This document shows, one piece after another, positions 1 to 33,782 of a stretch of DNA of 64,000 nucleotides (positions within the stretch are counted from its first letter, which is position 1; every line of letters begins with the position of its first letter). The notes under the pieces were generated by a model that ran no database searches, had not been told where the DNA came from, and worked only from the letters and a program-made list of their open reading frames with translations. Made by a program: the position numbers and the translations under genes. The stretch is from the NCBI GenBank assembly GCA_001643675.2, contig LSRY02000001.1, positions 2,542,001-2,606,000 of the forward strand, in the 5' to 3' direction. The DNA comes from Monocercomonoides exilis PA203 (Eukaryota; Protista; Preaxostyla).

Positions 1-1387
1 TTTTATTGAATTTTTATTGTATAATTTTAAATGCAATTCAAAAAGCGAGGGATTTAATGACTTTGAAGAAGAAGAAAAGAGGCGAAGGAGAAGGCAAAGA
101 AGAAGAAAGACAAAAATTCAAGATATGATGAAGATGCATTCCATTGGGCTTTGGAAATGAGTTATCTTTGGTAGAAAGACAATTTTTCGAGAAAGAAGTG
201 AAGAAAACGAGGAAGATTTTGAATGAAAAGAATGATCTCCAAATATTTCATGATTTTTAAAGGTGAAAAGGAAAAATCAAGTTGAATGCGTGAAAGATTG
301 AGAAGACAGTGCTTTAAAGAACACACAAAAATGGAAGAAGAAAAAGAGCAACGTTTGATTTTGCTGAATTTCAATCTGTTTATTTGTTGCTGTTTCTGAT
401 CGGAATTCCTCCGAGCTTTTCATCTCATTTTGTTAGCTTCAATCGTTTATTTATTAATTCAGCTTCTTCTTCTTCTTCCTCTTCCTCTTCCTCTTCCTCT
501 TCTTTAACATCTTCACTGATTCAAAGAAATGTTGTTTCATTCATTCTTTTCAACTCTCCGTGAATTCTTCTTCAAGTTTTGTCTTTTATTTCTATTCACA
601 AACACAAAGGCAATTTTCTCATCTGTCAAGAAGAAGCAGCTTAAGCACCGAGGCAATGGAATGGATGTGATATTGACATCCAATCAAAAAAAAAGGAGGA
701 TGATTCTTTCATTTAATCATTTGACTGTTGAATGAAGCGCAGATGAAATAAAGAAGATATATTGGAATAATTTCACTTTTGGAATGGACGATTGAAGTGA
801 AGGAATGCGACAGATTTCATAACGTGTCATCTCATTTGTGAGTGACAGAAGAGTCAAAAGGAAATGAGAGAAAGACAAAGAATTTGAAATGGAGAAGGAA
901 ACTGTCACAAAAGAAATATTTGAAATGACAAATGGAGATAGGATTATTGAGAGCAGATATTTATTTTTTTTTGTTATTTATGATAATTTGGTGATGATAC
1001 AATTGGTGAACAATCAGTTTTTCTGAAAGGGAAGTTTTTGATTTGAAAATGTTGGCTTCTGGAAATGTGTGAATGAAAATCATTCGAATGAACAAAATAC
1101 TCTGTTTTCTCAGTTATTCATGCACATTCTCCAAAAGATTCTTTCTTCTTTTTTTTCATTTGAATTCCCAGTTTCCATGTTTCAGTATTCTTTTTTGAAC
1201 ATTCTTTTTTCAAATTCAAATCATTAAAAATTGAAAAATTAAAAAAAAAAAGAAAACATTTTCTTCAGATATATTTTTCTATTTGCATTGTTGGAATTAC
1301 AGATCTGAAATGAAGCAAAACCTCAGTCAACCCCATTAAAAAATCTTCCTCTTCAAAAAAAACAAGGATAAGAAAAACGCTCAAAGT

Positions 1388-1417
1388 TCATATATTTATC
1401 AAATAATCTCCGTAATA
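1388..1417 (-). pseudogene. Displaced 3' end (YYGDYLINI*) of family gene copy A
   Basis: The minus strand reads TAT TAC GGA GAT TAT TTG ATA AAT ATA TGA, matching the paralog C-termini IFDYFVNV*, ISEYFVNI* and YYADYF. Confidence 0.88.
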
Positions 1418-1789
1418 GGTGAGTATTTTTATTGGCACCAGTTTTTTTATTGGCACTAAAAATTATTTTCATAATCTTCATTTCATTAAAGCTCATAAAT
1501 CTGTTTCATAACTTAAGAACAATAAACAAATAAAAATTAAGCTGTACGTCAAATATTTTTTCAAAAAACTTTCTCAGAAAAATGATCTAATAATTTTTAA
1601 CTTTTATATTTCGATCAATGTTTTGCTCGTATTTTCTTGACTGATTGCAGTTGCGAGTTTTTATCACGGAATTCACAAAAACAACTGTATTTTCCGTATT
1701 TGTTACTTATTTGTTATATTTTGAACCATTTATTTAAGTGTATTTTTGCATTTCACCATTTTTGTTAAAACATGCAAAATCAAATGAAT
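1418..1789 (+). repeat. Left terminal inverted repeat (372 bp)
   Basis: Reverse complement of 6826-7197, with no mismatch found by eye. Contains the motif TTTTTATTGGCAC twice (1426-1438 and 1444-1456). Confidence 0.95.
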
Positions 1790-2499
1790 GTGTATGTCTT
1801 GTTAAAAAATGTCATAAGAAATTGATAAAATAATCTTTATTGTATATTGTTCATGTTTTGAAAACGAATTTATATGGGTGATTTTTTTTGACACCAAAAA
1901 AAAAGATCAAAAGTCTTAAAAAAAATCAATTGTGGCATTTTTTGATCAAAGAGTTAAATCAATTTTTATACAAGCATTTAGCTTTTATTTCTGTCGTATA
2001 TATTTGTTTTATTTCCTTGGGACAATATTTTTTGCTTTATGAATTTTGTTCCATTCTTCTCTAACAAATATTTTTCTCAATTTTTGAATTTTTCTAAAAT
2101 TAATAACATAATTTCGGTTGATTTATAATGAAAAGATTGAAGAAAAAGTTTGGAACAAATCTCAATTTTTTTCTAAGTTGCAAAAATTTTTCCACCCTTA
2201 TGCAAAAAACATACCTCTTTTATGTTTTTTAATGAAAGAGAATTTTTTGATTAAGTTTTTTAAAAATTAACAATAAATAAACGAATAAAACTTCAGGAAA
2301 AAAGTAGAAGATTCAGGACTAACTTTACAATACTGATAATAGGAAAATAAAAACAAAATACATTGGAAAAGTTTGATATTAGAAAAAAATATTATTTTTT
2401 TGATTTTCAAAAAAGAGAACTGTTCGATATCTTTAATTTCTTATGATTTAACATCACAAAATCATCATTCCAGCTTTGTAGCTCAGCTTCAACAGTAAA

Positions 2500-5400
2500 A
2501 CAAAATTGAAAACTGTGGAAAAAGAAATGTTTCTAAGAATAACAATTGATTTAAATTCGTTATCTCTTTCTATTCACCTGATTATTTGGCGTTCAAACTT
2601 TCTTCTCCATCTCCTTTGTTCTTCATCCATAAATTTCCATTATTGCTTCTTTGACATTCTCATTCTGCAACGCACTCTAACGCTCCTTAATCGCCAAAGG
2701 AATTCATTCAGCTCATCCTGCACTTCCTCTTCTTTCTGCTTTTATTTCTTCATTAATTGCCACCTCCCCTGCCCTCTCCCTCTCCCTCGCCAACTGCACC
2801 ATCACAAACATCAACTCAGAACAGTTGAGCCAACAAACTGCCACCAATGGCGGGTGCATCTCATTCGCCTCATCTGCCTCTGCCAACTCGTTTTCAGTGA
2901 GCAACACAGCCTTCTCCACCTGCTCTGTGAGCGAGGATACAAGTTCTGGAGGAAGAGGCGGTGCTCTCATGATCGAGTGCAAGGATGATTCACAAGTGTC
3001 ATCCACAACCTTTTCCATCACCAATATCGTGTTTTCAACCAACAAGGCCAGTATCGGAAGTAATATGTATTTTGTTTGAGAATCCCTTGTTGTTTCTGTG
3101 AACGAGTCTTCCTTCGCCTTCATGAGAAGCATCACTCAATAATAAAATACGATTGTTGGACACGATAGAACGCAAATGTTTAACGATTGAGATGTTGACT
3201 TATTTATATTTCTCAGTTGACAATATGCAAACACAGTAGATATTAGTAGAGTGTCTGGTGTCAAGGAAGTGAATCGTGGTTTGGAGAAATGATCATGTTT
3301 GAATGAGAACGACGGGATTGGACTCCTGAAAAATGCGCAGAAAAATGTAGCAAAGACGAAGATAAAGGAGAAGATAAAATAAGCAGAAGATGAAGATGAA
3401 GACGCTGTTGTAGCAACAGAATTGCCTGTCTGTTTGTTTGTGTGTGCGTTTCTTGAAAAGTGAAAAGTCTAAAAAGGAAGTTAAAAATTTTTAATTCTAT
3501 TCATTCTTTTTCTCTCACTTTCTCTCTCCATCTCCTTCTCTTCCTCTCCCCTGGTTTTATTTTTTTTCTCTCTATCCCCATCTTCAGCCTCCATTCCCTT
3601 TGCTGCTTCTTTTCTATCTTAAGATTCCCTCCTTTCTTCTACTCTTTCACTTTCGTATTCTCACTGAAAATGTCGTGAGAAGGCGCAAAAGAAAAAATTG
3701 GTACGCAGATTCGGCTGGCGGTGTGTTTTTATACGGCCGAATGAAAATGTGGTGGAGTTGAAGAGGAGGTTAATGCAAGAATGAAGAGAGGATTTCTGTT
3801 TCTGGTGATGTGAGCTTGGCTGACTAGAATAGCTAAGCTTCAAAGCGGTCGGTGGAGGTATATCTGAGAAGGAAGAAGTATACGAGAAGGAAGATGTGAA
3901 GGAGAAGCAGTTACAAAAGAAGGAGATACTGATAATAAAAAAGCTCTTTTGTTGATTTTGCAGAAATGAAGAATAAGAATAAGAAGAAGAAGAAGAAGAG
4001 GGATTACAGATGGTATTGAGAAGAACAACGCTGTCAGCTGCAACGGCGAGATCATTGGCGTTGAGATGCTCGATGGAGGAGCTTGAGCCATAGCCGAACA
4101 CGAGCAGTGAAGAGGAAACACTGAGAGCGGAGAGGTTGGCGTGGGAGATAAAGAATGAAGAAATGTGAAGAGAACGAAGAGTGGGGCAGGAGAGATGGAA
4201 GATATTTTAAAAGAAGATTGATAGAAGAAGTTTTCTCATGAAAACACAAAAAAGTGCGGAGTTGAGGTGGACATACTTGTCGGCTGCAGAAAAGAGGGAA
4301 GAGGATGCAGTGAGGGATCTGTCGAGAGGAGAAGAGGGAAGAGTGTGCAGATGCGAAGGAAGAGTGGAAAGAAATATTGCAGAAGGTGAGGATGCAGTTA
4401 TTGAGAAAAGCGACAATAGCAATGAGAAAGTTGTTGCGAAGAAAACAAGTACAAGATTATCCGAGGTTCAATCGACTCGGATGAAAGCAAGGGAGATCGG
4501 TGTATCGAAGAAGGAGGAGGCGAAGATTCAGAAGGCGTTGCAGATGGCGCGGGAGATATGGAGTGCAAATGTGGAGAGTAAAGCGCAGGGGGCAAGCGGG
4601 GAGCAGTACTGGCAGGAATAGGAGTCAGTATATTATTCGACGAATATCTGGTGGGTGTGGAAGAAGGTGATGAAGGGGAGGAGGAGAGATCAAGGACGGG
4701 GATGGTGTTGGTGTGGGAGGAGTCGGAGCAGCTGATGGAGGTGTTTGTGGCGAGGGAAGGCTGGGTGAAATCGAGGGAAAAGAGGTGCTCGTTGATTTGG
4801 TAGCTGATGCTGGAGCACTGGAGAAAGGCGTCCTCATCCACGAAGGCGTCGTTCAATGCACGGCAGTGGTTGAAGATAGGGAAATGGATAGAGTATTTTC
4901 GAACTCGGTGCAGTCGACAAAAATCTCGCTGCCTCTGACTGTTAAGCCGGAGCAGATGCATTATGTGAGGATTTATGATAATATGCCCAACAGCTACTCC
5001 AGTTAAAATGGAATGAAGTATCTCCTAATATTGTTCAGCCGAATGCCCACTTGCGAGCAAATCGAAGCCCGTGTCCTCTTTCACAAATGCCTTGTTGACC
5101 ATGATTGCCCAGAAATACTCACAAGAGAGATCGAGCGAGATGAATCGGCTGTGTCCAACTCAAATCCGTTAAGCTTATTGAGAAAGCTCAAGTTTGTGCA
5201 GAACTTGATCCTGTTTAATTGGCTTATATCCACAACAGCCTGAAGCATGCTTTTAATTGTCAACTTCTATTTGTCCTTCCTCGTATCGCATCCAGTTAAC
5301 ATCACATGCACAAGGGCAAACAACCTGATGGCATCAGCTGCATCCAAGAACATTTCGCCACCCAAGCCATGGCTCTGTTCCTCACTTATCATAGATAAGG

Positions 5401-6000
5401 CGGTACACTCTCAAAGGATGAGCCGTTTATCAGCAGTACAGCCCCTGTCGCCAGCTCAGCTGTAACATTACCTCCTCTGGCTTTTGTTTGGTTCCTCATT
5501 TCCTGCACTGCCTCGCCTCTTCAAACCCCTGCCATATTTACCTGCCTGCCATCTCAACTCCACTTCGGCACACGCTCAGAAATCAATTTTCTTCATTGAA
5601 CAGCATTGCTGCCTTCATGCTGTATTTATAAAAACAAACTGCATGTCATATTTTATTGCATTTCGAAGTCGCTCAGGATCGGCCTTTCAGAGCTTAATTA
5701 TACCTGCCTGATAAATTGTCTTTCCACATCTCAAAGTTTTCAGGTGCAACATGAGTTACGCTGTTGGTATGGCCAGTTGAATTGGAAGCTGCGCAAGCGG
5801 TAGAATGCACCAAAAGCTATCAAACTTCTGACTCAAACGATAAGTCAGAAAGATTTTTATTATCAATTGATGCAGAGTTATCAGTGAATTTGGAAGTTTT
5901 GCAAACAGGCAGATCAGCTATCGCAGCAAAGCATTGAACGATGTTGAGGTCCAGATAACAGAAGGAAGCTTAAAAAAAGAGGAAGCGGAAGAAGGATTGT
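2500..6000 (-). pseudogene. Decayed protein-coding-like cargo inside the TIR element (unknown helical protein fragments)
   Basis: GC is higher than in the flanks. Minus-strand ORF pieces (2713-3135, 4398-4961, 5081-5263) continue through scattered stops, e.g. ...EMFLDAADAIRLFALVHVMLTGCDTRKDK*KLTIKSMLQAVVDISQL... Confidence 0.5.
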
Positions 6001-6825
6001 CAGAGAGGAAGATGAGGGAAAAGAAGTGTGGATGTCTGAAAGGAAGTTGCAAAAACGCTTAGGGAGCTTTTGATTTGTCTAAAGAAAAACTTCCTGAATT
6101 GTATAGATTCTTATCTTAACATTTTTTCATTAATAATTTTTCTATAACTTTTTTAAATCAAATTTTTAAATCAATATCTTATTGAGTAACATTTGTATAT
6201 ATAAAAAAAAGAAACTTTCTATTGCTAATATGATAATGTATTTGTTGTTTAATCATTTTAAATGAAAACTGCCTTTTACATAGAGAGTTTATAATAAATA
6301 ATTACTGCTTAAAAAAAACCAATCAGATTATAATACCTCAATAACCAACAACATCGCATTTCTTTTTAAAAAAATAGTTTTATTTGTCATGAAAATTATA
6401 CCAGATATGTTTTATAATCTATTGAACGCGTGTTAAGTTCTCTTTATTAAAGTTTTGCAATTTAAATGAAAATTTTAAAAATTTTCTTTGAAAACTGAAA
6501 AAAACAAATATTAAATAATTAATATCTATAAATGAATAATAATAATAATAATATTTTTAGCAGTATTTTCGCATAATTTTTCTTCATTTTTTCTTATCAG
6601 CCCAACCCTTAATGAAATATATATTTGATCAAACGTCGGAATTTTTTATGATATCAAAAAAAATCACACATATTCAAAATAATAAAGAAATCAAAGGATC
6701 ACGCTTTTTAAAGAATTGCATTTTTTTAAGCAATGACAAATAGGCAATTATCAAATATCAAGAATTAATTTCTAAATACACCTTTTATATATTTTCAACT
6801 TCATGTGAATCAATAAAATAAAAAT

Positions 6826-7197
6826 ATTCATTTGATTTTGCATGTTTTAACAAAAATGGTGAAATGCAAAAATACACTTAAATAAATGGTTCAAAATATA
6901 ACAAATAAGTAACAAATACGGAAAATACAGTTGTTTTTGTGAATTCCGTGATAAAAACTCGCAACTGCAATCAGTCAAGAAAATACGAGCAAAACATTGA
7001 TCGAAATATAAAAGTTAAAAATTATTAGATCATTTTTCTGAGAAAGTTTTTTGAAAAAATATTTGACGTACAGCTTAATTTTTATTTGTTTATTGTTCTT
7101 AAGTTATGAAACAGATTTATGAGCTTTAATGAAATGAAGATTATGAAAATAATTTTTAGTGCCAATAAAAAAACTGGTGCCAATAAAAATACTCACC
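6826..7197 (-). repeat. Right terminal inverted repeat (372 bp)
   Basis: Reverse complement of 1418-1789. Identity ends at ATTCATTTG (6826-6834) versus CAAATGAAT (1781-1789). Confidence 0.95.
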
Positions 7198-8604
7198 TAT
7201 TTCGGAAGAAGATAAAAATTATCGAATTCCGAAAATCGAATAACAACATGAAAACTTGTGATTGCATCTTCATATCCTTCTTCTTCCATCTTTTCAAATA
7301 TCTTTCTTTTCATTTCTTCTCTGTCTTTTCCCCTCATTCTTTCCAATTTTTCTGAAATCTCCAAAAAGAAATCCAAATAACACCTTGTAAAATCGTCTTT
7401 TAATGTTTGTTGCTGAATCTCCGCCAGAAAAACATCAATGGATCCCCCTTTCAATAAGTCTTCAATCATCATAGCTCTTCTATGTACTGCGTCTCTTAAT
7501 GAAAAAATGCAATGATCGCAAAAATCTCTGCAATTATCTTTTGCGGCATAAAATAACAGTACAATTCCTTCAACAAGCAGAACAGATTCTTCATTCCATA
7601 ATTTGGACCGGAATAAGTAATGATAAACTGTATTGATCCATCTCCTGATAATTATCAATTCTTTCGCTTCTTTCGTTTCTTTTTCTTTTTTATCATCTTT
7701 TCTCTTCCGATCCACACACTTTGAAAGATCTTCCACCTCTCTTGTAGCCTCTCTTGCGAAATGAAGTTCTTTCGCAATCATTCCTTCCATGTTGATGTCC
7801 AAGGAAAACATTCTAAACAAAATCTTCCAAACTGACCAATATGCAAGTCTTGTCAGATTGCTATGTTTCTGATTAAATTTGATGATTTCCTTCAGTTCAT
7901 TCAAATGCAAAATTTTTCCTTTTCCCTAATGAAAAACAGGGGAAAAAAAATATCATAATATCAAAAATGAAAAAATAATATTCATACTCGGTATATAACA
8001 GTACTCAATGCAAGCAATGCGGTTTCTGCTTCTTTTTGTGTTTCTTTGCTTTCATCCTTGTTTGCTGCCTCTTTCAGAAGGCAGGACACACAAACTTTTG
8101 TCATGGTTTTATTAATGGACTAAAATTCGTTATGCAACAAAAGGAAGCATTCACAGAGATCAGTCAGAAACTTCTCGTTTTCCCTTCTTTCTTCTTCTCT
8201 TCTTCAACAATAAGATTTTTAATCCTTTTTCCCAATGAAGATCTTTCAAAGAAACTTGGAACAAATCCTTTCAACGAATAGAAACACCCCATGTGCTTCG
8301 GAAAAAGCAATATATTTCTTAAAGGAGTTTTCTTTCCCTTTGTGATTTTTGTTATTTTGTTGAACAATTCAATTGTGCAAGTTGTTTCGAATTCATGCTT
8401 GCTCATCTCATCAATCATCCATTCATTTCTTCAATTTTGACTTTCTGTTCATCCTCGTTGCAACCTTCAAGTTCGTCAAACAGTTCTTCATATAACACGA
8501 AAAGGGTGAAAAACTGTTTGTTTTTCATAACATTCAGGAATGAACAAACTCAAAAACTTGTCCACAATGTTCATTTCTTGAATTCCATCATCTCCAGCGT
8601 CCAT
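7198..8604 (-). pseudogene. Expanded three-exon hypothetical gene family, copy A (disrupted)
   Basis: Exon 1 MDAGDDGIQEMNIVDKF from 8604; introns 8486-8549 and 7926-7987. Family motifs LFDELE, NLTRLAY and KMEEEGYED are present. Frameshifts lie near 8419 (shared with copy B) and near 8175, and the C-terminus is cut by the TIR element. Confidence 0.85.
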
Positions 8605-10567: not shown

Positions 10568-13500
10568 ATGAGCCAGAATGATCGTTTGCTAATCGGGCGC
10601 ATACCGGATTATCAAGAGTTGAAACGTATTGTTCAAGTGGAGGACAAGTTCATTGTGCAGGAAAATGAAAAGAGAAAACAAAGCAAAATTGGCAGATGCT
10701 TTCAAAGAAACTGCTCATATTTTGTTTTGCATCTTTCATTGATTTTGGTGTGCTTTAATTCATATGATGTCTGAGCTGAGTATTTGACAAAATTTTGTAT
10801 GAAAAAATTTGTTATTTTAGATAATTGCTTTGGCTGCAGCAGTTGTCCTTTTATTTTGGGAAAGCGACTTTTCATTCCGTCATTGCTTTTATACGGTGAT
10901 GTCAGCTGTCTGTGGCGTGGGGCTGGCTGGATTCAACATCTCCAACTCGAAGTTTGGAACCCAATTGGTTCTGATGATAACGATACACCTCGGAAGCTCG
11001 TGTCTCTTGTCTCTTTTGCCGTTGGTATTGAAAAGAAGGTATATCCGGAAGCATTTCAACCATCCGGTTGTGAGGCAAACAATCGAACTTGAGGATGCAT
11101 CTCCGACTTCGAAGAAGGAGAATGAACTCAAGCAAGAGTTATTCGTTCAGTTCTCAAAGGAGCAAATAAAAAGAATTCCTCCATCGCCTATTTTCACAAT
11201 CCAGCTGCCAACGCAACGCGAGGGGGCTGTTTCCAAAAGGCGTCCAAACGAGCACATTACCTCTGCTCACACAATTCATATGCATCCTTCGCCACTTTCT
11301 GCGTCGTCTTCGCTGGCTTCGCTTCCGCCGAGGCCACAGAAAGCGAAAAGGGCGGAAGGCAAGCTGCCGAAAGCATCAGCCATTTCTTCTTTCAATGGGC
11401 ATCCTGTTCGGCCACCTTCAGTTGCTTATGCACCACACACGCCTCACTCAGCTGCCTATTTCGGAACTCAACAATTCATTCCAACTAACTCGCCATCATC
11501 GTCATCATCATCGTCATCGCCCTCTTCCTCTCCTCCTCTTCTTCCTTCTTCCTCTTCTTTTTCAACTTCTTCTTCTCCTTCTCCCTCGACTCCTCCAATC
11601 AGCGTAAGCACACATCCAATCACAGCTGCCCTCTTTCAGCCTCCGACTCCTCCGCGTGTATCGCTGAACTCCCCACATCCAATCATTTCTTCCTCTTCTT
11701 CTCTTTCTTCTTCTAATTCTTCTCTTTCTCCTTCTGCTTCTTCTTCTTCTCTTCCTCTGTCTCTTCCTCGTTCGTTTGCCAATCTTCCTCCTGCTTTCAC
11801 TTACAGCCCATCTTTCTGCGCTGCTTTTCCAGCAAAGCAAAAGTCTTCTCTTTCTTCATCATCATCAGCATCTTCAAATAGAAATGCCAATCAAAGGAAT
11901 TCTCGAAGGTTCCCTCGTCCCATTACTCTCAATCCTCCACACAAAATCAATTCGAAGTTGCTTTATACATCTTCTCCTCTCCCACCCCCTCTTTTTCCTT
12001 CATCTTCATCTTCCTCCTCAATTCATTTTCCAACATCTTCTTTTCATTCTTCCTCCTCCTCCTCATTTTCTCCCCCGCTGCTCAGCAACAGCAGCTCAGC
12101 CACAGCCACTCTGGCGCCACACGCAGCCCAAGTTCTGATTCAGCTGCTGGACGAAGCAAGAAAGGAGAGCAAGAAGCAGAGGGAAGAAGACATTGCGCGG
12201 AAAGGAAGAGGGAAAGAAGGAAAAGAGAAAGGAAAAGAGAAAAGAAAAGAAAGAGAGGGAGAAGGAGAAGGAGGAAAAGCATACTCGATTTGTGATGATG
12301 ATAAGACATCGAGTGTGATTGCGACCATCAAGAACGAAGGATATGTGGCACCAGCCACAGCGCTTAAGCGGAGGCACAGTGTGAGGTTTTTGCAGAAGAT
12401 GAGGGAGAAAAGAGCCAAGCAGAGAAAAGATGAAGAAATGGAAAAAGAAAGAGAGGAGTCAAATCGGAAGAGCAAAGCAGATGATAACAACGATGCAGAA
12501 AGAGGAATTGCGGGTGTGGAGGAGATGAAAGTGAAAGTGAAAAAGGAAAACGATATGGGAGAAGAAGAAGAAGAAGAAGGGATGGAAGTGATGGAGGAAG
12601 AGGAAGAGCAAGAGAAAACGACGCTGCCGTTGTATCTCTTCTCTTTGGAGTATCTTGGCATGGGCGAGATTATCCGCTCGATGATTGCGTATGTGCTGAC
12701 GTGGTATGTTTCAGGCACCCTGTTGCTTGCTGTCCCTTCCTTTTGCACTCCTTCCATCCGCCTCAACATTCAGTCGTGTCTGCAGCAGACTTTCCATCTT
12801 TCTGCTGCCACAGTGGCTGCAAACGAGGCGGATGCCCCCTGTTTTTTCCGGGTGTTGTGGTGGGGCCTGTTCACAGCAGTATCTGCATTCAACGGGGCGG
12901 GGCTGAGCATCACGCCTGCATTCTTTTGGGAGTCGATCAGAGGAGGAAACCATCTTGGAGCGATTGTTGGGGTGGTGCTGATGATTTTGGGGGGGCCAGC
13001 GATATTTATGCTTCCGTTTTCTGTGTGGATGAGGGGGAAGAGGAGGTATTTGAGGTGGAGAGAGAAGAAACAGAGGGAAGAGATGGAGATGGTGATGAGG
13101 ATGGAGGAGGAGGAGGAGGAGGCAAGGAAAAGAAGGAGAAGAAGAAACAAAGGAAACGAGGCGAAGAAAATAGAGAACACAGGGCAGGAGGAAAAAGAAG
13201 AAAAAGAAAAAGAAAAAGAAGAAGGAGAAGGAGAAGGAGGAGAAGAAAACAACTTTGATGATGAATCCAAATCAAAAAACCTGCAAAGCATTCATCCCTC
13301 CTCCTCCTCCTCCTCAAACATATCCTCGCAGCGTGTTCTGCAGCTGGAGCAAGAAGAGCTGGGAGGAGAAGAGGCGAACGGATCTGCTGGGTCGTGCCAG
13401 GCGATCGACTATGTGCTGGCGCATCCCCGTGAGATATACTCTTCTCTCTTCGACTCTGCAGAGCTGATCGTGCTTTCTGTCTGCTTCTTCTCTCTCTGTC

Positions 13501-16500
13501 TTCTCGAGGTGGTGTTCATTCTCGCTTTTGGGGCGCAGACAGCCCCGCTTTCAGAAGTGCACCCAGTTTTGCGTGTGTTCATGGCGGTTGCGCACAGCGT
13601 GAGCGACAGAGGATGTGGGATGGGAGTGATTGACTTGTCGAGGATGGAGCCTGGGGTGATCCTTCTGATCTGCTTCACAATGGTGCTTTCGGCGTATCCG
13701 TTCATTCTGACGCTGCATGCAACAGCGATTTCGGTGGAGAAGGCGGCGGCGGAGGAGGAGACTGAGGAGACTGAGGAGAAAGAGGAGGTGGCTGTGATGG
13801 AAGGAGGAGAAAGAGGAGAAAGAGGAGAAAGAGGAGAAGAAGAAGTGGAAGAGGAGAAAAGAAGTTCATTTGATGCATCTTCAGAGACAGAAAAAGGATT
13901 GAGAAGAAAGCGAAGTGAAAACACAGAAAGCGATCAGATTGACAGTTCGATTGAGGTTGGGGTGAAAGCAGAGGCGAGAAAAAGGTGGGAAGAGGAGCAG
14001 AAGGAGAGGAAGAGGAGAAGGAGAAGGATGATGGTGAAGAAGCTGTTGAAGAAGGAGAAGAGGAAAAGGAAGAGGAGGAAAATGGAAAGAAGAAGGGGAA
14101 AAGGAAGAGGAGGAAGAGAATCGGCAGAGGTGATCCAGAAGAAAGAGAGCGAAGAGCGTTTTGAGGACTATTTTCCGAGTCGCCATTCGCTGCACAATTC
14201 AGCAGAAGAAGATTCAGATGAAGGCAAAAGCAATTCTGAAACATCATCAACTTATTCTTCTTCTTTTTCTTCTTCCTTGTCATCTCTTTCATCTTCATAT
14301 TCATCACTATTTTCTTCCTCGTCATCATCATCATCTTCCTCTTCCTCTTCCATTTCGTCTCCTTCCAAGCCATCCATCTTTCAGTCCAATCAATCCACAC
14401 CACATCTTTCTCCTCCCTTTTCAATTTACACAGCAAAATCCACATTCACCACTCGCCCATTCAGAGACGAGCCATTTTCTTCTTCTTCTTCCTCCTCTTC
14501 CTCTTCTTTTCCTTCTCCTCTTCCTTCTTCTTCGAAGGTCTCAACTCCTCTTTCTCCACTGAATGAAAGGATGGAAGGCTCAGATGAAATGATTGCTCCG
14601 ATTTCTTCTCCTTCCTCTTCATCTGAATCACCTGAATTTCAAGCATCAAATCTGCTATGTCCTCCTTCTCATCCTCCACTTCCTTCTCCCTCATCATCAT
14701 CATCATCTTCTTCTTCTAATTCTTCTTCGCCTTCTTCATCTCAACAAGATTCTAATCAACAAGCAATCACAGCCCCTTCTTCATTGCCTCTTCCTCTTCT
14801 TCCTCCATCAGCATCATCATTATCCTCTTCTTCCTCTTCTTCTTCCTCTTCCTTTTCCTCTTCTTCTTCTTCATCTTCTCAAATATCTCCTTCTTATTCA
14901 CTTCCTCTTGATGTCAGCCACATAACACAATCGCATCCTTCCTCTTCTCTTTCTTCTTCCTCCTCCTCTTCTCTTTCTCCTTATCCTCTATCCCTTTCTT
15001 CTTCTCAACCGCATTTGCGTCGTCATCCAATCAAGCAAAACAGAAGTGAAGAATTAAACACGAAAAGTCGAACTGTCTTGCCAAAGAAACATCATTTGAA
15101 TAGCAAAGGGGAAGAAGAAGAAGATGATGATGAAGAAAATTTGAAGAAAGAAGAAGGAGAGGGAAAAGAAGGAAATGATGAAAATGAACATATTCATCGC
15201 CATCATCATGAAAATGATAACAAACATAAACATAAACATCATCATCATCATCACACTCATCACAGCAATCATTCAATTCATCAATTAAGCTGTTTGAATG
15301 AGGAAAATGAGGAGATGAAAAGAAAGAAAGGAAATGAAAGGAAAAGAGAAAAGGAAAGAGAAAGAGAAGAAGAAGAAAGAAAGAATAATCAAATTAGTTC
15401 AACGTATACTCATCTTCCTCTTCCTATTTCAAATTTCCCTTCTTCTTCTTCCTCTTCAATTTACATTCCTTCATCTTCCTCTTCCTCTTCCTCTTCCTCT
15501 TCTCTTCTTCTCCCTCATCGCCCTCTTTCCATTCTTCAGCCATTCAAAAACACAATTTCGTTGTATCGAAAAAGAGTGAGCGACAGAACAAGCAAAGACT
15601 TGCACCAGAGAGGAAGATTTATTCAGCCTGTGTTTGTGGCAAAGGGGGGAAGAGAAGAAGAAGAAGAAGATGATGATGATGATGATATGAAAGGAATAAG
15701 AGAGGAGGAGGAAGAAGAAAATGAAAGAGAAGGAGAAAAAGAAAAAGAAGAAAAAGAACCATGTGATGTAGATTCAGGATTGCTTAACAGTCAAAGCCTT
15801 TCTCAATCATCACCATCATCTTCTATTTCTTCTTCTTCTTCTTCTTCAAATAATAATCCACCTCCTATTCTGCTTCCTCTTCCAATATCTTCCTCTTCCT
15901 CTTCTTCTTCCTCTTCTTCCTCTTCTTCCTCTTCTTCCTCCCCCTCCTCAACTTTTTCTAATTCCTCCACTCTTTCTAATTCCTCCTCTTCTTCTTCCTC
16001 TTCTTCTCTTCCCTCTCATCATCAACCAAACAAATCTCGTTCATTCTTTTCTCTTCTTTTTCGCCGTCCTTTCGACAGAAAATACGAAGTTGATGTTGAA
16101 AAAGGTGGAATTTCGAATGCTTCTTCTTCTTCTTCTTCTTCTTCCCATCTTTCTTCTCCTTCTATTTCTTCTCCTCAATCTTTTTCTTTTCTTCCTCCTC
16201 TTCCAACAAACAATGAACAAGTACAAACAAACAAACAAACAAAACAAGAAGAACTGAATTTGGATAATTCTTTTTATTCACAAAATTTAAGAGAAAATAA
16301 AGAAAATAAAGAAAATAAAGAAAATAAAGAAGAAAAGAAAAAAGAAGAAGAAACGAAGGAAACATCAAAAGATTCGTCGAATTTGAAAGGAATTGCAAAA
16401 GTGTTCAGTTCTCTTTCTTTGATGGAACAAGAAGAGAAGAGAAGAAGAGAAAGAAGAAGAGAAGAAGGAAAAGATAAAAAGGAGGAAATAAAAGAGAATA

Positions 16501-18686
16501 ACAACAAAGAAGAAGAAAGCAATGAAGAAGAAGAAGACGATGATGATGATGAGAAAAGCAAAGAAACAATTGAACCTGATCTTCTCTCAGGAACATATTT
16601 AACATCCAATTCTTCTTCTTCTTTTCCTTCTTCTCTTTTATCTTCTTCTTCTTCTTTATCTTCTTCTTCTCCTTTATCTTCTTCCTTTCCATTGTCTTCT
16701 TCTTCACCAAAATATCAAACAGAAACAAACATTTTTCTTTTGTCTCCTTCTCCAAACGAAACACCCAAAAAAGATTATTTGGAAGGAAAAAGAAGAGAAA
16801 AAGAAAAAGAAAAAGAAGAAGAAGAAGAAATGAAAAATGAAGGAAAAGAAGAAATTGGAATGAAAAGAGCAATTGTTGATGTTTCAGATGAGATGAAAGA
16901 AGAAGAAAGAGAAAAACACAAAGAAGATGAAGAAGGAAAAGAAAGGAAAGAAAACGGCAGCAAAACCAAAGAAAAGCAAATAAACTCCTCAAAATATGGA
17001 TTATTTTCTAAATTTCCAGACATTTCTTCTTCATCTTCTTCCTCTTCTTCTTCAACAGATTCGTTCTCATGCAACGAAGAACAAGAAATTCCTTCTTTTT
17101 CAACAACATCATCATCAGAAAATTTGAGAAAAGAGGAAGAAGATGATGAAACAGAAATGAAAGCGATTAAAACAGCAAATGCATCACAAATGATGGATTT
17201 GAATGAAGAGAAAAGAAATTTCGATGTTTACAAAAGGAAATCTTCAATTCTTCCTTCATCATCATCTTCTTCTTCTTCGTTGACCCCTTCTCAAATATCT
17301 TCACCTTCCCAAACAGACAAATCAACAAAATCAAACAAATTCCCAGATAAATCTGTTGGTTCCCCAAATAAATCAAATAAAACGAACAAAACGAATAAAA
17401 CAAACAAAAAAGCAAAATTAACCTTTTTTGAGCGCTATCCGTCAATCCACTTGCTTTCCCGCCTTTTCATTGATTTTGCCTCCATCCAGCGCGAACATCC
17501 ACTTTTGAGAGATTTGATTTGGCTTTCTGTTGGGTGGCTGATTGTTGTGTGTGTTGAGTTGCCGTTGGTTGAAGGAGAGAAAGGAAGTTGTGAGAGAATG
17601 AAGGAAATAAATGGAATAAATGGAATAAATGGAGTGAATGGAGTGAATGGAGTGAATCAGATTAAAGGAATACAAAAAATGAATGAAAGTGTGGAGAATA
17701 ACAAAAAACATAATTTTTCTTCTTCTTCCTCTGATTCTTCCTCCAATTCTTCTCCCTCTCACCCACCTTATCTCTCTTCACTCTCTCTTCTGCACGAGCT
17801 GGCCTCTGATTATTCCGGGACAGGAATGAGTTTTGGCTGGTTTGGCTCAGAAACAGCACTTTCTGTTCATCTTTCGGGTGTCACGCAGTGGATAGTGATT
17901 GTGTTGATGGCGATGGGGAAGCAGAGGGGTTTGCCTTCAGAAGTGGACAGATCGATTGCGAAGGGCTCGTTTGATGGAGCACCAGAGGAGGTGTTTCGGC
18001 TGCTGGGGTGGGAGGAGGTGAGGGAGATGGGGCTGACGAGGGAGAGAGGGAAGGGGAAGACCAAAGGGAAGAAGGAGAAGGAGAAGGAGATGAAGGAGAA
18101 AGGGAAGAAGAAGGATAAAGGAGAAGATAATGAGAAAAAGAATGAGAATGATGACATTTCAAAGCAATCAACAGAAACAACAAAAACGAAACTTTTCAGC
18201 AAAACACCTTTGAGACATATTGTTTTTCCTTCTTCATCCTCATCTTCTTCTTCTTCTTCTTCTTCTTCTTCTCTGCAAAGCAAAGACTTTCCAAATATCT
18301 CTTCCACACTCACCACAATTGCACACACTCCTCTTTTTCTGACTTCTTTGCCTGACTCAAGCTACACTTTCTCTTCTGCCCTTCCTTCTTTCAAATCTTT
18401 ATCATCATCTTCATTATCATCTTCTTCTTCCAATCCATCAAACTTGAAAGGAAGTGTTTTGGAACAAAATGATTTGTCAAAATCGAATCATTTGCCTCGC
18501 TCATCTTTCATGGACATTTTTGTTCCTCCTCCTGTTTCATCGTCTTCGTCGTCATCGTCATCTTCTTCTCCTCCTCCTTCTTCTTCATCTCCTGTTCGCC
18601 CTTCTTTTCATCCTCCAAATCATTCTTCTTATTTGTCTTCTTCTTCTTCATCTTCTCCTTCCCCATTAAATCAACCTGATTTATGA
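10568..18686 (+). CDS. TRK: Trk/Ktr/HKT-family cation (K+/Na+) transporter, ~2681 aa, with very large Ser-, Glu/Lys- and His-rich insertions; exons 10568-10747 and 10821-18686
   Basis: Four membrane-pore-membrane units with pore motifs SAVCGVGLAG, FTAVSAFNGAGLSIT, HSVSDRGCGMGVIDLS...MVLSAYP and LHELASDYSGTGMSFG. The C-terminal GKQRGLPSEVDRSI matches the fungal Trk motif GRHRGLP..LDRAI. A phase-0 GT..AG intron (10748-10820) joins the ORFs at 10550-10774 and 10830-18686. Confidence 0.88.
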
Positions 18687-19532: not shown

Positions 19533-20995
19533 TTAATACAAATGTTCAAAAAAATAATCTGCATAATAGTCAGAAAGAGAATAATCATAACGAAATTTCA
19601 AAATTCGTGAAACAACATGAAAGCTTGTGATGATGTCTTCATATCCTTCTTCTTCCAGTTTATCAAAAACTTTCTTTTTTGTTGACTTTCTTTTCGTTTC
19701 TTCATTTTCATTTCTCTCTTTTTCTTTCATTCTATTTGAAATTACCAAAAAGAATTTCAAACATTTCATCAAATGGCGATTTAATGTTTGACTTTGAATC
19801 TCCTCCAAGACAGCATCAAATGACCAACCTTTCAAAATCCCTTCAATCTTCATCGTTCTGTTCATCACTGTTCCATATAATATATTCACGCAACATTCGC
19901 TCATATTCATGTTAATATCCCTTGCAGCTCTGAGTAATCGCACAATGCTGTAGACAAGCAGAACAGATTCTTCGTTCCACAATTTGCACATGGTCAAATA
20001 ACGGCCAATCACAAAGAGCCATTTCATCATCATGTGCTCTTCTTCTGGTTCTTTTCCAATTCCTTTTTCTTTTTTCGCTTCTTTTTGCTTCTTCTTCCAA
20101 TCTTCATGTTTCATCAACTTTTCGAGTCCTTTTGAAGCTTCTCTCACAAAATGTAGCTCATTCACAATCACTCCCTCCAAACTTTCGTCGAACACGAATC
20201 TTTTTATCAAAAACTGCCAATCAGACTGATAAGCAATTTGAGTGAGATGGCGATGTTCCTGGTGATACAGGATGATTTCTTTGATTTCATTCAAATGCAC
20301 AATTTTTCCTTTTCCCTAATGAAAAACAGGAAAAGAAAAATATCATAATATCAAAAATGAAAAAATAATATTCATACTCGGTATCTAACAGTACTCAATG
20401 CAAACAATGCCATTTCCACTTCTTTTTGTTTTTTTTCGCTTTCATCCTTGTTTGCTGCCTCTTTCAGAAGGCAGGACACACAAACTTTTGTCATGGTTTT
20501 ATTAATGGACTTAAATTCGTTATGCAATAAAAGGTAACACTCACAGAGATCAGTCAAAAGCCTTTCATTTTCACCTTCTTTCTTCTTCTCTTCTTCAACA
20601 ATAAGATTTTTAATCCTTTTTCCCAATGAAGATCTTTCAAAGAAACTTGAAGCAAATCCTTTCAACGAATAGAAACACCCCATGTGCTTCGGAAAAAGCA
20701 ATATATTTCTTAAAGGAGTTTTCTTTCCCTTTGTGATTTTTGTTATTTTGTTGAACAATTCAATTGTGCAAGTTGTTTCGAATTCATGCTTGCTCATCTC
20801 ATCAATCATCCATTCATTTCTTCAATTTTGACTTTCTGTTCATCCTCGTTGCAACCTTCAAGTTCGTCAAACAGTTCTTCATATAACACGAAAAGGGTGA
20901 AAAACTGTTTGTTTTTTAAAACATTTAGGAATGAACAAACTCTAAAACTTGTCCACAATGTTCATTTCTTGAATTCCATCATCTCCAGCGTCCAT
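19533..20995 (-). pseudogene. Hypothetical gene family, copy B (5' end disrupted; possibly translatable from the ATG at 20809)
   Basis: Introns 20877-20940 and 20317-20378. Exon 1 has a TAG (20942-20944) where copy A has TTG, and it shares the frameshift near 20810 with copy A. The ORFs at 20372-20809 and 19533-20300 are open. Confidence 0.75.
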
Positions 20996-24071: not shown

Positions 24072-25475
24072 ATGCAGAAGATGTGCAATACAAAAAAGTT
24101 CAATGGTGTGCATTCGTTGTTTCATTTGAATTCCTGATGATTGTGGTTCTTTCTGTCTCAGAAATGTTTTCTGAATTAGAAGATTGCGATGAGGATGAAC
24201 GGAAACAGAAAATCGAAGAAATGAATGAACTTATTAGCGATATGAGCAAAGAAGAATTTTATGGTATTTTCAACTTGGAAATGTTCGACCTATTCGACAA
24301 AATGATTGATGAAATGAAAATACCATTTGAAAATGCAATTATTCTATTGAAACACGCAGGATATTGGAGATTATTGAAAGATATGTTTATTAATGGATTT
24401 GAAGAATCTTCATTGAAAAGAAGAATTGAGAAGATGATAGTTGACAAAGAATACAAGAAAAAGATAATCGAAGAGAAAAAAGCAATGCATTTGGTTAATG
24501 CTTGTGAATCCTGCGTTTTTCTGAGTAGACACTTCTTTCCACCTGAATTGTTTACAATTTGTGTTTCTTGTCTGTTGAAATATGTGTCGAACAAAGAAGA
24601 AACTGAGGAAGTTCAAAAGGAAGTGGAAATGGCGTTGCTTGCATTGAGCAAATGTTACTATTTAGGAGTGTGTTTCTTTTTTAATTTTGATAATATTGAA
24701 AATTTTCATTTTTTTTTTTTTTTTTTTTGAGAATTTGGATCAAAAAGTGTTTTTGAATGAAATCAAAGAGATTATCCACTTTCACCAGGAACATCACAAC
24801 CTTACACGACTTGCGTATCAATCGGCTTGGGAGCTTTTGATTTACACATTAATTGGAGAAAAATTTTATGAACAAGTGATTGTGATAGAGCTGCATTTTG
24901 TGAGAGAAACAAGAAGAGAACTGGAAGAGCTTTCAAAGTGTGTGGATTGGAAGAGAAAAAAAGTGGAAAGAGAAAAAGAAACGAAAGAAGTGATTGTTTT
25001 GATGAGATGGCTAAATTCATTGGAGTTTTTCTTTCGTTTCTGCTCATTTTGGAATGAAGAATTTGTTGGGCTTTTCGGCAATGTTGTTCAGTTATTTCGA
25101 GCATCAAGTGGCAATCACAGAGAAATAAGAGGGGAATGCATTGATTTTTTTCGAGAAGCAGCCGGAAATAAAATTATGAAAGTTGAAGGTTTGTTGAAAG
25201 GAGGAGCTATTGATGCTGTCTTGGAAGAGATCTCGCAGCAATCATTGAATGAAGATAATAAAATTTGTTGTTTCTCATTTTTCTTGGAGCTTTCAGAAAG
25301 ATTGCAAGAAGAAAAGGAAGATGAAAAGGAAGAGGCGAAAAGGAAAGTGTTTGATAAGATGGAGGAAGAAGGATTGGATGATTGCATCATCATGTTTCAT
25401 CATTTCTTGCTTGAAGAAGAACTCCCTTTCAGTTATCCTGACGAAAATCTGGAGTGTTATTTCATGCCTTTGTGA
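24072..25475 (+). CDS. Hypothetical gene family, copy C (apparently intact; exons 24072-24105, 24162-24667, 24732-25475)
   Basis: MQKMCNTKKFNE-MFSELEDCDEDERKQKIEEMNE...HNLTRLAYQSAW...KMEEEG...YFMPL*. The GT..AG introns keep the frame and sit at the same positions as in the other copies. Confidence 0.85.
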
Positions 25476-25658: not shown

Positions 25659-27066
25659 TCAAGCATTTAAAAAATAATTAGAAACATTTGATGAATATGT
25701 TTAAAAGTATTTTTGTCTCAGAAAATCAAATATTTCTAAAAAGCTAACAACGACATCTTCGAATCCTTCTTTTTCCATCTTTTCAACCACTTTCCTTTTC
25801 AGCCCTTTTCGCTTCGCTTCATCAGTCTCATCATCTTTCGATTTCAATCGACCAGAAACATTCATGAAGAACCTCAAGCAGTCATATGCCATTTCATAAT
25901 CCATTGTTGGCTGCCGAATTCCCTCCAAAACAGCATCATCTGCTCCACCTTTCAACAACCCACCAATCTTCACTGCCCTCTTTTCAGATGCTGCTTTCAG
26001 CAAATCAATGCATTTCATGCTGTATTTCCTGTTATTGTACTTCGCTGACCGAAACATCCGAACAATGCAGCAGACAAGCTCGGAATATTCGTCATTCCAC
26101 AAGTGGCAGGAAAAAAAGAAAAACTCCATAATTCGCAGCCATCTCAATTTAACAATTTTTTCTTTCTTTTCTTTTTCTCTATCCTCTTCTTTCTCTCTCT
26201 TCCAATCCACACATTTCATCAGTTCTTCCAATTCTCTCACTGCCTCTCCGACAAAATGCAGTTCATTCGCAATCACTAAAACCAAGCTTCTTTCGTGAAA
26301 TGTTCGGTAAAACAAAAACTCCCAAGCATAATGATATGCAAGCTGGGTTAAGTTGCGATGCTCCTGATGATGAAGGATAATCTCTTTGATTTCATTCAAA
26401 TACAGCTCTTCATCAATTTTCTAATAAAAATTTGAAAAATATCAATAATATCAAAAACAAAACAGCAATGCTCAAACGTGAAACGTGTCAATGCGTCTCA
26501 AAGCCAATAAAGCCATTTCCACTTCTTCCTTTGTTTCTTCGTTTTTATCTTTGTTTGAAGCAACTTTCAGAAGACAAGACACACATATTAATGTCAATTC
26601 CGAATCGAACTGGTTGCTAAGCAAAAGATAGCATTCGTAAAGATCAGTCAGAAGCTTCATGCTTTTCCCTTCTTTCTTCTTCTCTTCTTCAGCAATCATA
26701 TTTTCAAATTTGCATTTCACCAATGAACAACAAAAATTATTTTTTCAGATATTTTTCTCCAATAAGCAACATCCAAGATTCTTCAACAACAAAATCGAAT
26801 TGTCAAAAGATAATTTCTGTTTGTAAATCATGCAGTGTATTTTAAAGAAAAATTCTTTTTCAACAATAAATTCAAGCATTTCTTTATTCATTCCATCAAT
26901 TATTTCATTCATTTCTCCAATTTTTCGCTTCTGCTCTTCCTCATTGCAATCTTCAAGCTCAGAAAACAATTCTGAAATAAAAAATTAAGAAGTCCATTCA
27001 ACAAGAATTCAAATGCAATAATGAGCGCAAACCATTAAACATTTTGATTCTACTCGTTGACTTCAT
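25659..27066 (-). pseudogene. Hypothetical gene family, copy D (two in-frame stops)
   Basis: Introns 26972-27032 and 26421-26477. TGA at 26745-26747 sits where copy E has Trp (KNIW). TAA at 25701-25703 is followed in frame by TYSSNVSNYFLNA-TGA, the family C-terminal motif. Confidence 0.8.
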
Positions 27067-32352: not shown

Positions 32353-33782
32353 ATGCAGAAGATGTGCAATACAAAAAAGTTCAATGGTGTGCATTCGTTG
32401 TTTCATTTGAATTCCTGATGATTGTGGTTCTTTCTGTCTCAGAAATGTTTTCTGAATTAGAAGATTGCGATGAGGATGAACAGAAACAGAAAATCCATAT
32501 AATGAATGAAGTTATCGATAAAATGGATAAAAGGCAATTTGAATCAGTTTTCAACACAGAATTGTATGATAAAATATTCAAAATGATTGAAGAGAAGAAA
32601 ATGACAATGGAAAATGCAATTTTGCTGTTGAAGCATGTTGGATGTTGGAAAGCGCTGAAAAACATTTGGAGTAATGGTTTTTATAATTCTGAATTGAAAA
32701 GAAGATTTGAGAGAATGATTATTGATGAAAATAAGAAAAAAAAGGATGAAAAGAACGAAAAGCTCATGATTGATCTTTGCGAATGCTATCTTTTATTGAA
32801 CATGTGGATTTCTTCGGAATTGCTTTCAATTTGTGTGCCTTGCATTCTGAAAGTGGCATCAAACAAGGATGAAAACAAAGAAACACAAAAAGAAGTGGAA
32901 ATAGCATTTCTTGCATTGAATAATGTTAAATTCTACGTATGAGCATTTCTATTTTATTTATGATATTATTGTTTTTTTTATTCATTGATTTTTTTAAAAT
33001 ATAATTCTTATAAGGAAATCAAAAAAGAGCTGTATTTGAATAAGATTACAGAAATCATAGAATATCATCAAGAATATCACAATCTCACTCGCCTTGCCTA
33101 TCAGTCTGCTTGGCAATATTTAATGAACAGATTCTTCAATGATAATAGCTTGGAAGAAGTGATTGTGATTGAGCAACATTTTGCAAGGGAGGCAGCAAGA
33201 GAATTGGAAGAGCTGTCAAAAAGTGTGGATTGGAAGAAGAACGAAGAGGAAATGAGAAAAGAAAAGGAAGAAATGATTACCATATTGAGATGGATGCAAA
33301 CACTCTCATTTTTCTTTGGGAACTGTTATTTGTGGAACGAAGAATATGTTGGGCTTTTCAGCAGCATTGTTGGGGTGCTTCGTGCATCGAGGGATAATTA
33401 CAGAGAAATAAGCGAGAAATGCATTTGTCCATTTGAAGAAGCATCAGGCCGCAGAGTTGTGAAAATTGGCAGCTTGTTGAAAAGCGGAGCTGTTGATGTT
33501 GCTTTGGAGGAGATTCATAAATCAGCAAAGGACGACGAGATTGCAGCCAAAATCTTGAAATTTTTTATGAATGTTTCAAGAAGATCGAAAGAAAAGAAGA
33601 AAGATGAAATCGAAGAAGCGAGTCGAAAATCAATAAAAATGGAGATATTTGAAAAGATGGAAGAAGAAGGATATGAAGATTTCATCACTAGCTTTCATAA
33701 AACATTTGACTTTCTAAGTAATAAGTATTATTTTGATGATGAATTATCGTTGGATATTTTTGATTATTTTGTGAATGTTTGA
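32353..33782 (+). CDS. Hypothetical gene family, copy E (apparently intact; exons 32353-32386, 32443-32936, 33015-33782)
   Basis: Same exon structure as copy C. Family motifs LLLKHVG, QKEVEIAFLAL, HNLTRLAYQSAW, KMEEEGYED and DYFVNV* are present. Confidence 0.87.

Follow-up and report, generated by a model that had tools for sequence, protein, structure and literature searches.

A hairpin MITE with pogo-like tips and two further levels of insertion in a gene of the oxymonad Monocercomonoides exilis

A 5.8-kb insertion near the end of a gene in Monocercomonoides exilis PA203 is bounded by inverted repeats of 372 bp that match perfectly. Is this one young transposon that recently moved as a unit, or an older structure built in several steps? 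The window analysed is a stretch of 64,000 nucleotides (positions 2,542,001–2,606,000 of contig LSRY02000001.1), and its numbering is used throughout (Table 1). The account that fits the evidence best, with a probability of about 0.85, is that of a 982-bp hairpin MITE moved in trans by a pogo-type transposase, followed by nested insertions, with the arms kept identical by recopying.

Table 1. Features at the insertion site, in window coordinates
Feature	Position	Strand	Basis
Severed tail of host gene last exon (YYGDYLINI + TGA)	1388–1417	-	Paralog alignment, L071 reading
TA target duplication, left copy	1416–1417		
Left 372-bp arm (TIR) of hairpin MITE	1418–1789	+	Self-complementarity, family comparison
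Left part of 238-bp MITE loop	1790–1874	+	Alignment to sister copy C5
Nested non-autonomous repeat, 4,796 bp	1875–6670	+	Own short TIRs, own TA duplication
Third-level 177-bp insert within nested element	2019–2195	.	Comparison with other nested-family copies
Right part of MITE loop, second TA (6671–6672) at start	6671–6825	+	Alignment to sister copy
Right 372-bp arm, exact reverse complement of 1418–1789	6826–7197	-	
TA target-site duplication, right copy	7198–7199	.	Empty-paralog alignment
Host gene last exon, 237 aa, open, cut short by TAG	7197–7910	-	ORF; 84% identity to paralog exon
Host gene penultimate exon (approximate limits)	7956–8550	-	Homologous peptides spread over three frames

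The two arms are complementary at 372 of 372 positions, and each matches the same query at 100%. The termini are GGTGAGTA...TACTCACC, with TA adjoining both ends, just as a first-pass annotation of the window had described. The tip of the arm holds 1.9 tandem 18-bp units (1422–1456, found with TRF) with a TTTTTATTGGCACC motif; these units are presumed to be transposase-binding sites. Directly outside the arms, 8 of 9 bases are also complementary (1409–1417 / 7198–7206), but a TIR longer by 9 bp (1409–7206) was rejected: the empty site in a paralog has the same near-palindrome, so the complementarity belongs to the target site. ORF and Pfam scans turned up no transposase in the window copy, and an Rfam search over 1300–8000 gave no match.

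The paralog lies on this contig at a distance of 335 kb, is 84–86% identical, and has an uninterrupted target site in the alignment. Window segments 65–1417 and 7198–8462 align to it contiguously, overlapping on a single TA. Its empty site (C1:2208496–2208514) differs by one base from the junction that the first-pass annotation had predicted, and its ORF ends in ...FLPKYYGDYLINI*, identical to the C-terminus reconstructed there, so that the proposed boundaries and 2-bp duplication hold to the base. This paralog, L071, reads ...LPKYYGDYLINI* across its uninterrupted site. On the minus strand, 1417–1388 translates to YYGDYLINI*, in agreement with the tails of paralogs within the window, DYFVNV* and EYFVNI*. 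The premature TAG of the last exon (7199–7197) is made up of the TA and the base complementary to the end of the arm, which is the origin already assigned to it, and TTTTTCATTAG, an acceptor-like site at about 7911–7921, stands before this exon.

The insertion thus costs the host protein only nine C-terminal codons. The counterpart of the penultimate exon in L071 (1590–2219) is a single 210-aa ORF, and in the window it is split over three frames. Exact excision, which had been proposed to repair the gene, would return the nine codons but not an intact gene: the reading frame of the penultimate exon is already broken. The gene belongs to a very large, lineage-specific family of M. exilis. A Pfam search for a family name gave no match; an ARM/helical-repeat identity, suggested by look-alikes in the protein atlas that were weak and of low recognition, was not relied on.

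The long-TIR element is itself a family, with about 125 arm matches in the genome, at least 18 paired loci and a canonical length of 981–986 bp. TA is found on both sides in 10 of the 11 other copies examined, in line with the expectation that the TIR would recur at other TA-flanked loci. The canonical element of 982 bp consists of a 372-bp arm, a 238-bp loop and a second 372-bp arm, and the window copy aligns to a canonical copy at 1–447 and 457–982. The rest of the 5,780-bp insertion lies within the loop. The 4,796-bp element found there has short TIRs, TGGGTGATTTTTTTTGACACC / TGTGTGATTTTTTTTGATATC, and its insertion duplicated the TA at 1873–1874 at the end of the left loop part. In the closest sister copy, C5 (98%), the loop is uninterrupted, and GAATTTATATTCAAAAT is the exact empty site of the nested element. 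Other copies of the nested element are full-length (C74, 94%) or interrupted (C8, 97%, and C13, 91%); none of these three lies inside a long-TIR element, and the two elements are combined only at the window locus. Pfam searches found no known domain or transposase in six window-copy ORFs or in three longer ones from sister copies of the nested element. Inside the nested element lies a further insert of 177 bp, bordered on each side by CCTT (2015–2018 / 2196–2199), and all other nested-family copies have TTTCCTTATGC at this site. Over 3,968 alignment columns, 45 substitutions (1.1%) are private to the nested copy, and some of them may predate its insertion.

The MITE family provides internal controls for what perfect arms mean. 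Arm-to-arm identity within each copy is 98.7–100%, and 6 of 13 copies have mismatch-free arms, while copies differ from one another by 3–6%. There are 68 copy-private substitutions that are found on both arms, and these mirrored changes indicate that arms have been recopied from each other within elements. Independent decay at the rate of the nested copy predicts about 8 arm mismatches in the window copy; none is seen, and the nearest relative of this copy is about 2% different. Transposition does not reset the TIRs of DNA transposons. The flawless arms of the window element are no sign of youth, and perfect arms are no clock. The earlier step from perfect TIRs to recent mobilisation does not survive this comparison, nor does it fit the two further levels of insertion that the element already contains.

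Loop orientation was also compared among the MITE copies. An apparent 'flip-flop' of the loop was set aside, since with symmetric arms the orientation of the loop relative to the genome merely mirrors the orientation of the insertion; only the C91 pair is informative. Perfect palindromes extend into the flanks at C36 and C6, and C36 is a rearranged composite. The recopying may be an active and frequent fold-back templated repair that replaces the centre of the element, flips the loop, sometimes runs into host DNA and builds perfect host palindromes such as that at C36, though this is offered tentatively, as one possibility among others. In that case the MITE family would be driving the formation of palindromes in the genome of M. 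exilis, and such structures would not be nanopore artefacts. Multi-mapped short reads could inflate arm identity during polishing.

A candidate source of transposase is a 2.0-kb pogo-like DD35D transposon family with two exons and at least 15 copies in the genome. About 40 of the outer 43 bp are common to the MITE and the 2.0-kb element, including the tandem TTTTTATTGGCACC motif, and identity over the outer 40–43 nt is 90–95%; the tips differ at positions 4 and 8 and by one indel. All seven copies of the 2.0-kb element whose ends were read have TA flanks. The element matches Pfam DDE_1 (PF03184) at 47.1 bits, where the cut-off is 22 (E-value 2.6e-12), and has a DDD catalytic triad in NVDETS, FVDSHS and PLDRGV with spacings of 115 and 35 (D-115-D-35-D). 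The transposase is of the plain pogo/DDE_1 type. The 405-aa catalytic exon is open in four copies, and both exons are open in C7 and C59. A 44-nt GT..AG interval links the two frames and is probably an intron of the transposase. The two exons were searched separately rather than as a joined spliced protein: the 132-aa first exon, where an N-terminal DNA-binding domain (HTH, CENP-B/psq-type) was sought, matched nothing in Pfam at a threshold as loose as E<=5, and a sequence search of the PDB with the catalytic exon found no match.

No transposase-bearing element was found with the exact tips of the MITE, the single exception being the rearranged composite at C36, and the MITE is linked to a transposase only through the ~43 bp at the outer end of each arm. 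Two other types of partner were rejected: mariner-type transposases (PF01359) gave four weak matches only, none with MITE ends, and none of the 108 matches to DDE_3 (Tc1/IS630-type) was close to matching termini. With its TA duplication, shared TIRs, dispersed copies and lack of a transposase of its own, the MITE is best classified, by sequence features, as a non-autonomous element of the Tc1/mariner-pogo group. This agrees with the initial placement among TA-duplicating elements of the IS630/Tc1/mariner group, and the autonomous partner that had been anticipated elsewhere in the genome has a good candidate in the 2.0-kb family.

The closest parallel is Tc7 of Caenorhabditis elegans, an element of 921 bp with 345-bp inverted repeats, outer ~38 bp that are Tc1-like and a TA target, which is moved by the Tc1 transposase. 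Both are non-coding elements of about 1 kb with very long inverted arms and a short unique loop, and in both the match to the ends of an autonomous TA-duplicating element is confined to the outermost ~40 bp. Tc7 was reportedly described as a 'Tc1-hitch-hiking' element (Rezsohazy et al. 1997, Nucleic Acids Res 25:4048). In M. exilis the putative partner of the MITE is a DD35D transposase of pogo type, with the DDE_1 domain of Pfam, whereas that of Tc7 is a DD34E Tc1 transposase; the MITE resides in an oxymonad protist and has two further nested insertions, and its mobilisation is predicted only.

The Emigrant/Lemi1 pair of Arabidopsis is an example of a transposon and MITE in the pogo superfamily. 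The M. exilis family resembles this superfamily in its TA duplication, DDE_1 catalytic domain, DD35D spacing and the short TIRs (<=40–60 bp) of its autonomous form, but the N-terminal DNA-binding domain of its transposase is not recognised by Pfam. A DD35D spacing is reported for Passer and Fot/Fot-like elements (Gao et al. 2020, PMC7386202). Very long TIRs (392–856 bp) are reported there only for some insect pogo elements (PMC7386202), whereas the long arms in M. exilis sit on a non-autonomous derivative.

Two other kinds of element share parts of this structure. Foldback (FB-type) elements and Galileo of Drosophila have long inverted arms, a short loop and concerted arm evolution, and in the MITE, too, the arms within a copy are closer than arms between copies. 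The M. exilis arms lack the tandem subrepeat build of FB, with just the 1.9 units at the tip, and the MITE duplicates TA rather than 7–9 bp. Like Pack-MULEs, the window insertion is non-coding and has several kb of gene-like sequence between its TIRs, but this interior has its own TIRs and duplication and occurs independently, which makes it a nested transposon and not captured cargo.

We infer the following history. The 982-bp MITE would have entered the host gene nine codons ahead of its stop, at a TA that the cut-and-paste insertion duplicated. The pogo-like transposase would bind the 43-bp tips and mobilise the MITE in trans, much as the Tc1 transposase moves Tc7. At a later time, and in the simplest case at this very locus, the MITE loop would have received a non-autonomous, TA-duplicating element of 4.6 kb, and the nested element would in its turn have received the 177-bp element, giving the present length. 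Arm identity would have been kept by repeated recopying of one arm from the other, through intra-element conversion or fold-back templated repair, with a possible contribution from the polishing of the nanopore assembly with short reads.

An alternative to this history is a single young transposon of 5.8 kb with long TIRs, or a Pack-type element that has captured host cargo. Exact arms, an intact duplication and an interior with gene-like open frames but no transposase would all suit one unit moved recently, with perfect TIRs as the trace of recent activity, and such a unit with intact tips could in principle move. Against this, the interior is a separate repeat that has its own termini and duplication, independent copies outside any long-TIR element, an exact empty site in the sister copy C5 and no second locus shared with the MITE. 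Perfect arms are also normal among copies 3–6% apart with mirrored private changes, and the nearest relative is only ~98% identical. The single unit is improbable, and the 5.8-kb transposon of the first-pass annotation is better read as a 982-bp hairpin MITE plus a nested 4,796-bp element. The sequence does not fix the order of events, and the tips that the composite would have needed to transpose are intact, so the nested insertions may have happened first at a donor locus, with the finished composite then moving into the host gene. This is a lesser possibility, since the two elements occur together at one locus only, sequential insertion in place needs fewer assumptions, and the composite is longer; the cut-and-paste efficiency of Tc1/mariner elements usually drops as length grows.

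An introner-like element would use the tip TA/GGTGAGTA as a 5' splice site (TAG/GTGAGT, the slash marking the junction), and the insert would be spliced out and tolerated in genes. The MITE tip does fit the GTRAGT donor consensus better than the GGTTAGTG of the autonomous element, and with a TAG target, splicing of G/GTGAGT to ...CACCTAG/ would be predicted to restore the message exactly. Here, however, an in-frame TAG upstream of the donor ends the protein regardless, a T follows the second TA, hence there is no AG acceptor at the far end, and a G follows the TA in none of the 10 right-hand flanks examined; this reading is scarcely credible. Nanopore assembly and short-read polishing might instead have produced the insertion, or made its arms perfect. 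The assembly was built from ONT reads with Canu and polished with Nanopolish and then, in ten rounds, with Pilon (PMC8767320). Where two inverted arms are nearly identical, their reads multi-map, and the palindromes that reach into the flanks at C36 and C6 could have the same origin. An artefact would not create a canonical TA and exact family termini at both junctions, though, and arm differences of 1–5 bases persist in other MITE copies. Nor can polishing alone yield mirrored private substitutions, because a single-arm variant would mostly be averaged, not fixed on both arms. An artefact is thus very unlikely, and the hairpin MITE with later nested insertions remains the preferred reading.

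In other respects the locus is unremarkable, a decaying gene from a huge family that has taken up nested insertions. It does offer an oxymonad case, resolved to the single base, of a Tc7-like hitch-hiker that descends from a pogo-type transposon. 'Unclassified repeat' makes up 35% of the M. exilis genome (PMC8767320), and a description of the hairpin MITE helps to annotate part of it. The internal controls within the MITE family also show that perfect long TIRs are unusable for dating the insertions of DNA transposons.

The hairpin element in the window, hereafter the MITE, ends in two 372-bp terminal inverted repeats (TIRs), or arms. A direct arm-to-arm count gave 372 matches and 0 mismatches between the reverse complements, and both arms were recovered at 100% in a whole-genome search with one arm as query; the repeat finder reported them as a single joined 395-nt pair. 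The TAG stop of the minus-strand ORF at 7197–7910, the last exon of the interrupted host gene, consists of the flanking TA and the complement of base 7197, as the first-pass annotation had read it. At the other end, the minus-strand translation of 1417–1388 is YYGDYLINI-stop, which resembles the ends of two paralogs within the window. The 19-mer predicted for the empty site has one further genomic occurrence, with one mismatch (G000:C1:2208496–2208514; G000 is the M. exilis PA203 assembly and C1 one of its contigs). A natural uninterrupted paralog is found at this locus, in L071, a stretch taken from G000, to which the sequences on both sides of the MITE align such that the two window TAs map onto one single TA. 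Because these TAs coincide and the paralog ORF (L071:2286–3035, ending ...FLPKYYGDYLINI-stop) is uninterrupted, both element ends and the 2-bp duplication are fixed to the base, as had been claimed. Complementarity directly outside the arms (8/9) belongs to the target site, because the empty site shows it too.

Features of the window and their positions
Feature	Position	Strand	Size	Details
MITE, window copy	1418–7197		5,780 bp	termini GGTGAGTA...TACTCACC
MITE arms	1418–1789, 6826–7197		372 bp each	
TA flanking the MITE	1416–1417, 7198–7199			
Nested element	1875–6670		4,796 bp	TA duplication 1873–1874 and 6671–6672; own short TIRs
Third-level insert	2019–2195		177 bp	4-bp duplication CCTT
Alignment to L071	65–1417			L071 4326–3006; 83–86% identity
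Alignment to L071	7198–8462			L071 3007–1740; 83–86% identity
Terminal exon	7200–7910	−		cut by the MITE
Terminal exon	19533–20300	−		
Terminal exon	24687–25475	+		
Terminal exon	25701–26399	−		
Terminal exon	32985–33782	+		ends ...DYFVNV-stop
Terminal exon	41653–42441	−		ends ...EYFVNI-stop
Penultimate exon of host gene	~7956–8550	−		
Giant open frame	10830–18686	+	2,618 aa	
Giant open frame	34915–40467	−	1,850 aa	
Giant open frame	50347–58191	−	2,614 aa	

The published nanopore assembly of M. exilis PA203 has 82.3 Mbp in 101 contigs (PMC8767320), and G000 has 82,301,135 bases in 101 contigs. DNA transposons make up 4.5% of the genome and unclassified repeats 35%, with no individual families described (PMC8767320); a literature search on transposable elements of M. 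exilis gave no match. The family suspected from the window copy does occur elsewhere in this genome. Arm matches were scored at 43 places, from 125 first-look candidates, and these resolve into no fewer than 18 paired loci. Searching with a 24-mer from the tip gave 50 matches (control, 0). The canonical MITE is 981–986 bp long – a 372-bp arm, a loop of ~238 bp and a second 372-bp arm – and TA was present on both flanks in 10 of the 11 copies read.

The window copy had been described as a single 5.8-kb unit, which it is not. A canonical copy aligns with it solely at 1–447 and 457–982, so its loop holds an insertion of about 4.8 kb. In the closest sister copy (C5:954450–955431, 98%), the loop is uninterrupted and reads GAATTTATATTCAAAAT at the insertion point, where the window reads GAATTTATA/TGGGTG...CACACA/TATTCAAAAT; this comparison sets the limits of the insert and its TA duplication. 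The lengths sum to that observed (982 + 4,796 + 2 = 5,780). The 4.6-kb nested repeat is found full-length on C74 (94%), interrupted on C8 (97%) and C13 (91%), and as fragments at dozens more loci; none of the other copies lies within a long-TIR element. ORF and Pfam searches of the nested element found no recognisable transposase or domain; it is a non-autonomous transposon. Captured cargo was rejected as its identity, given its own TIRs, its own TA duplication and the independent copies elsewhere. The third-level insert is missing from every other copy of the nested family; its ends (GGGACAATATTTTTTGC...) look like sequence beside the hairpin copy on C6.

The interrupted exon belongs to a lineage-specific family with at least 150 members, nearly all open at ~254 aa (1,858 first-look candidates; 150 scored, all E<1e-53), and six copies lie in the window. 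The ~254-aa exon has no Pfam domain. Three giant open frames, GC-richer than their surroundings, are interspersed among these small family genes. Exact excision had been expected to repair the host gene. This holds for the last exon, which lost only nine residues through the MITE insertion itself and is preceded by an acceptor-like TTTTTCATTAG and a recognisable upstream exon, but not for that upstream, penultimate exon. In the closest paralog it is one 210-aa ORF (L071:1590–2219); in the window its counterpart is spread over three different reading frames and contains single-base indels and a stop. This points either to a pseudogene or to residual nanopore indel errors; unless the indels are such errors, the host gene was broken before the insertion, or later.

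The TIRs of DNA transposons, unlike LTRs, are not regenerated at each transposition. The perfect arms had been taken as a sign of recent movement, a reading that the family does not bear out: 6 of 13 MITE copies have mismatch-free arms and no copy has more than five arm mismatches, though arms of different copies differ at 8–23 of 372 positions. When all arms were aligned, 68 substitutions proved private to one copy yet present on both its arms; had the two arms decayed independently once inserted, almost no such mirrored changes would be expected. Two copies on C91, L027 (G000:C91:1374289–1375274) and L029 (G000:C91:1147030–1148015), are one insertion in a ~99% segmental duplicate. Their outer arms are identical, and all differences are confined to a central tract (239–748), with five exactly mirrored arm differences and loops in opposite orientation, ~17% diverged; the pattern fits replacement of the tract by conversion from another family member. 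In the window, 45 substitutions across 3,968 columns are private to the nested copy, and equal, independent arm decay at that rate would give ~8 arm mismatches, where 0 are observed.

Because arms are near-identical despite diverged copies, changes are mirrored, the C91 pair differs as it does and the expected arm decay is missing, the arms are held alike by arm-to-arm copying, probably through intra-element conversion or fold-back templated repair. Polishing of the assembly involved ten Pilon rounds (PMC8767320), which could have erased a few residual arm differences. The window element shows no sign of special youth: its nearest relative is only ~98% identical, and the three nesting levels point, if anything, to some age. 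In L064 (G000:C6:240399–242090 plus flanks), the hairpin copy forms a perfect palindrome of 900 nt around a 14-nt spacer. Within it are a 267-bp insert, found in both arms, and 56 mirrored flank bases, perhaps the ends of a further small MITE. L057 (G000:C36:539690–541952 plus flanks) contains a degenerate pogo-like element; on either side of it, mirrored at 100% identity, stand the outer 127 bp of the MITE arm and no less than 1,000 bp of host flank with a kinase-like ORF. The structure could be a true palindrome or an artefact of nanopore fold-back.

The assignment to a TA-duplicating superfamily was right, and the postulated autonomous partner exists. Tip matches with three mismatches led to a further group of loci, whose ends read GGTTAGTGTTTTTATTGGCACC. 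These are elements of 2,012–2,035 bp whose outer 40–43 nt are 90–95% identical to the MITE tips and contain TTTTTATTGGCACC two or three times in tandem; TA flanks every copy read, and copies are 90–98% alike at the DNA level. They encode a first frame of 132–137 aa and a second of 405–408 aa, which a putative 44-nt GT...AG intron would join; each exon was searched on its own. The second frame matches Pfam DDE_1 (PF03184; 2.6e-12, 47.1 bits, cut-off 22), and the spacings between its catalytic motifs NVDETS, FVDSHS and PLDRGV are 115 and 35 residues (DD35D). Pogo elements typically have a TA duplication and TIRs of at most 40 bp, and DD35D is characteristic of Passer and Fot/Fot-like elements (PMC7386202). 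The catalytic exon has at least 15 copies at 90% identity or more and is open in four (C7, C59, C11 and C10); both frames are open in C7 and C59. Genome-wide, the DDE_1 exon gave 1,190 first-look candidates, a very large pogo population. Many diverged pogo-like subfamilies (44–53% identity) with open ~405-aa frames are present in G000, as are 108 DDE_3 (Tc1/IS630-type) matches. In C. elegans, Tc7 has long arms of which the outer ~40 bp alone match the autonomous Tc1. The MITE likewise has long arms and shares just the outer ~40 bp with its autonomous element, and it was probably moved in trans by the pogo-like transposase.
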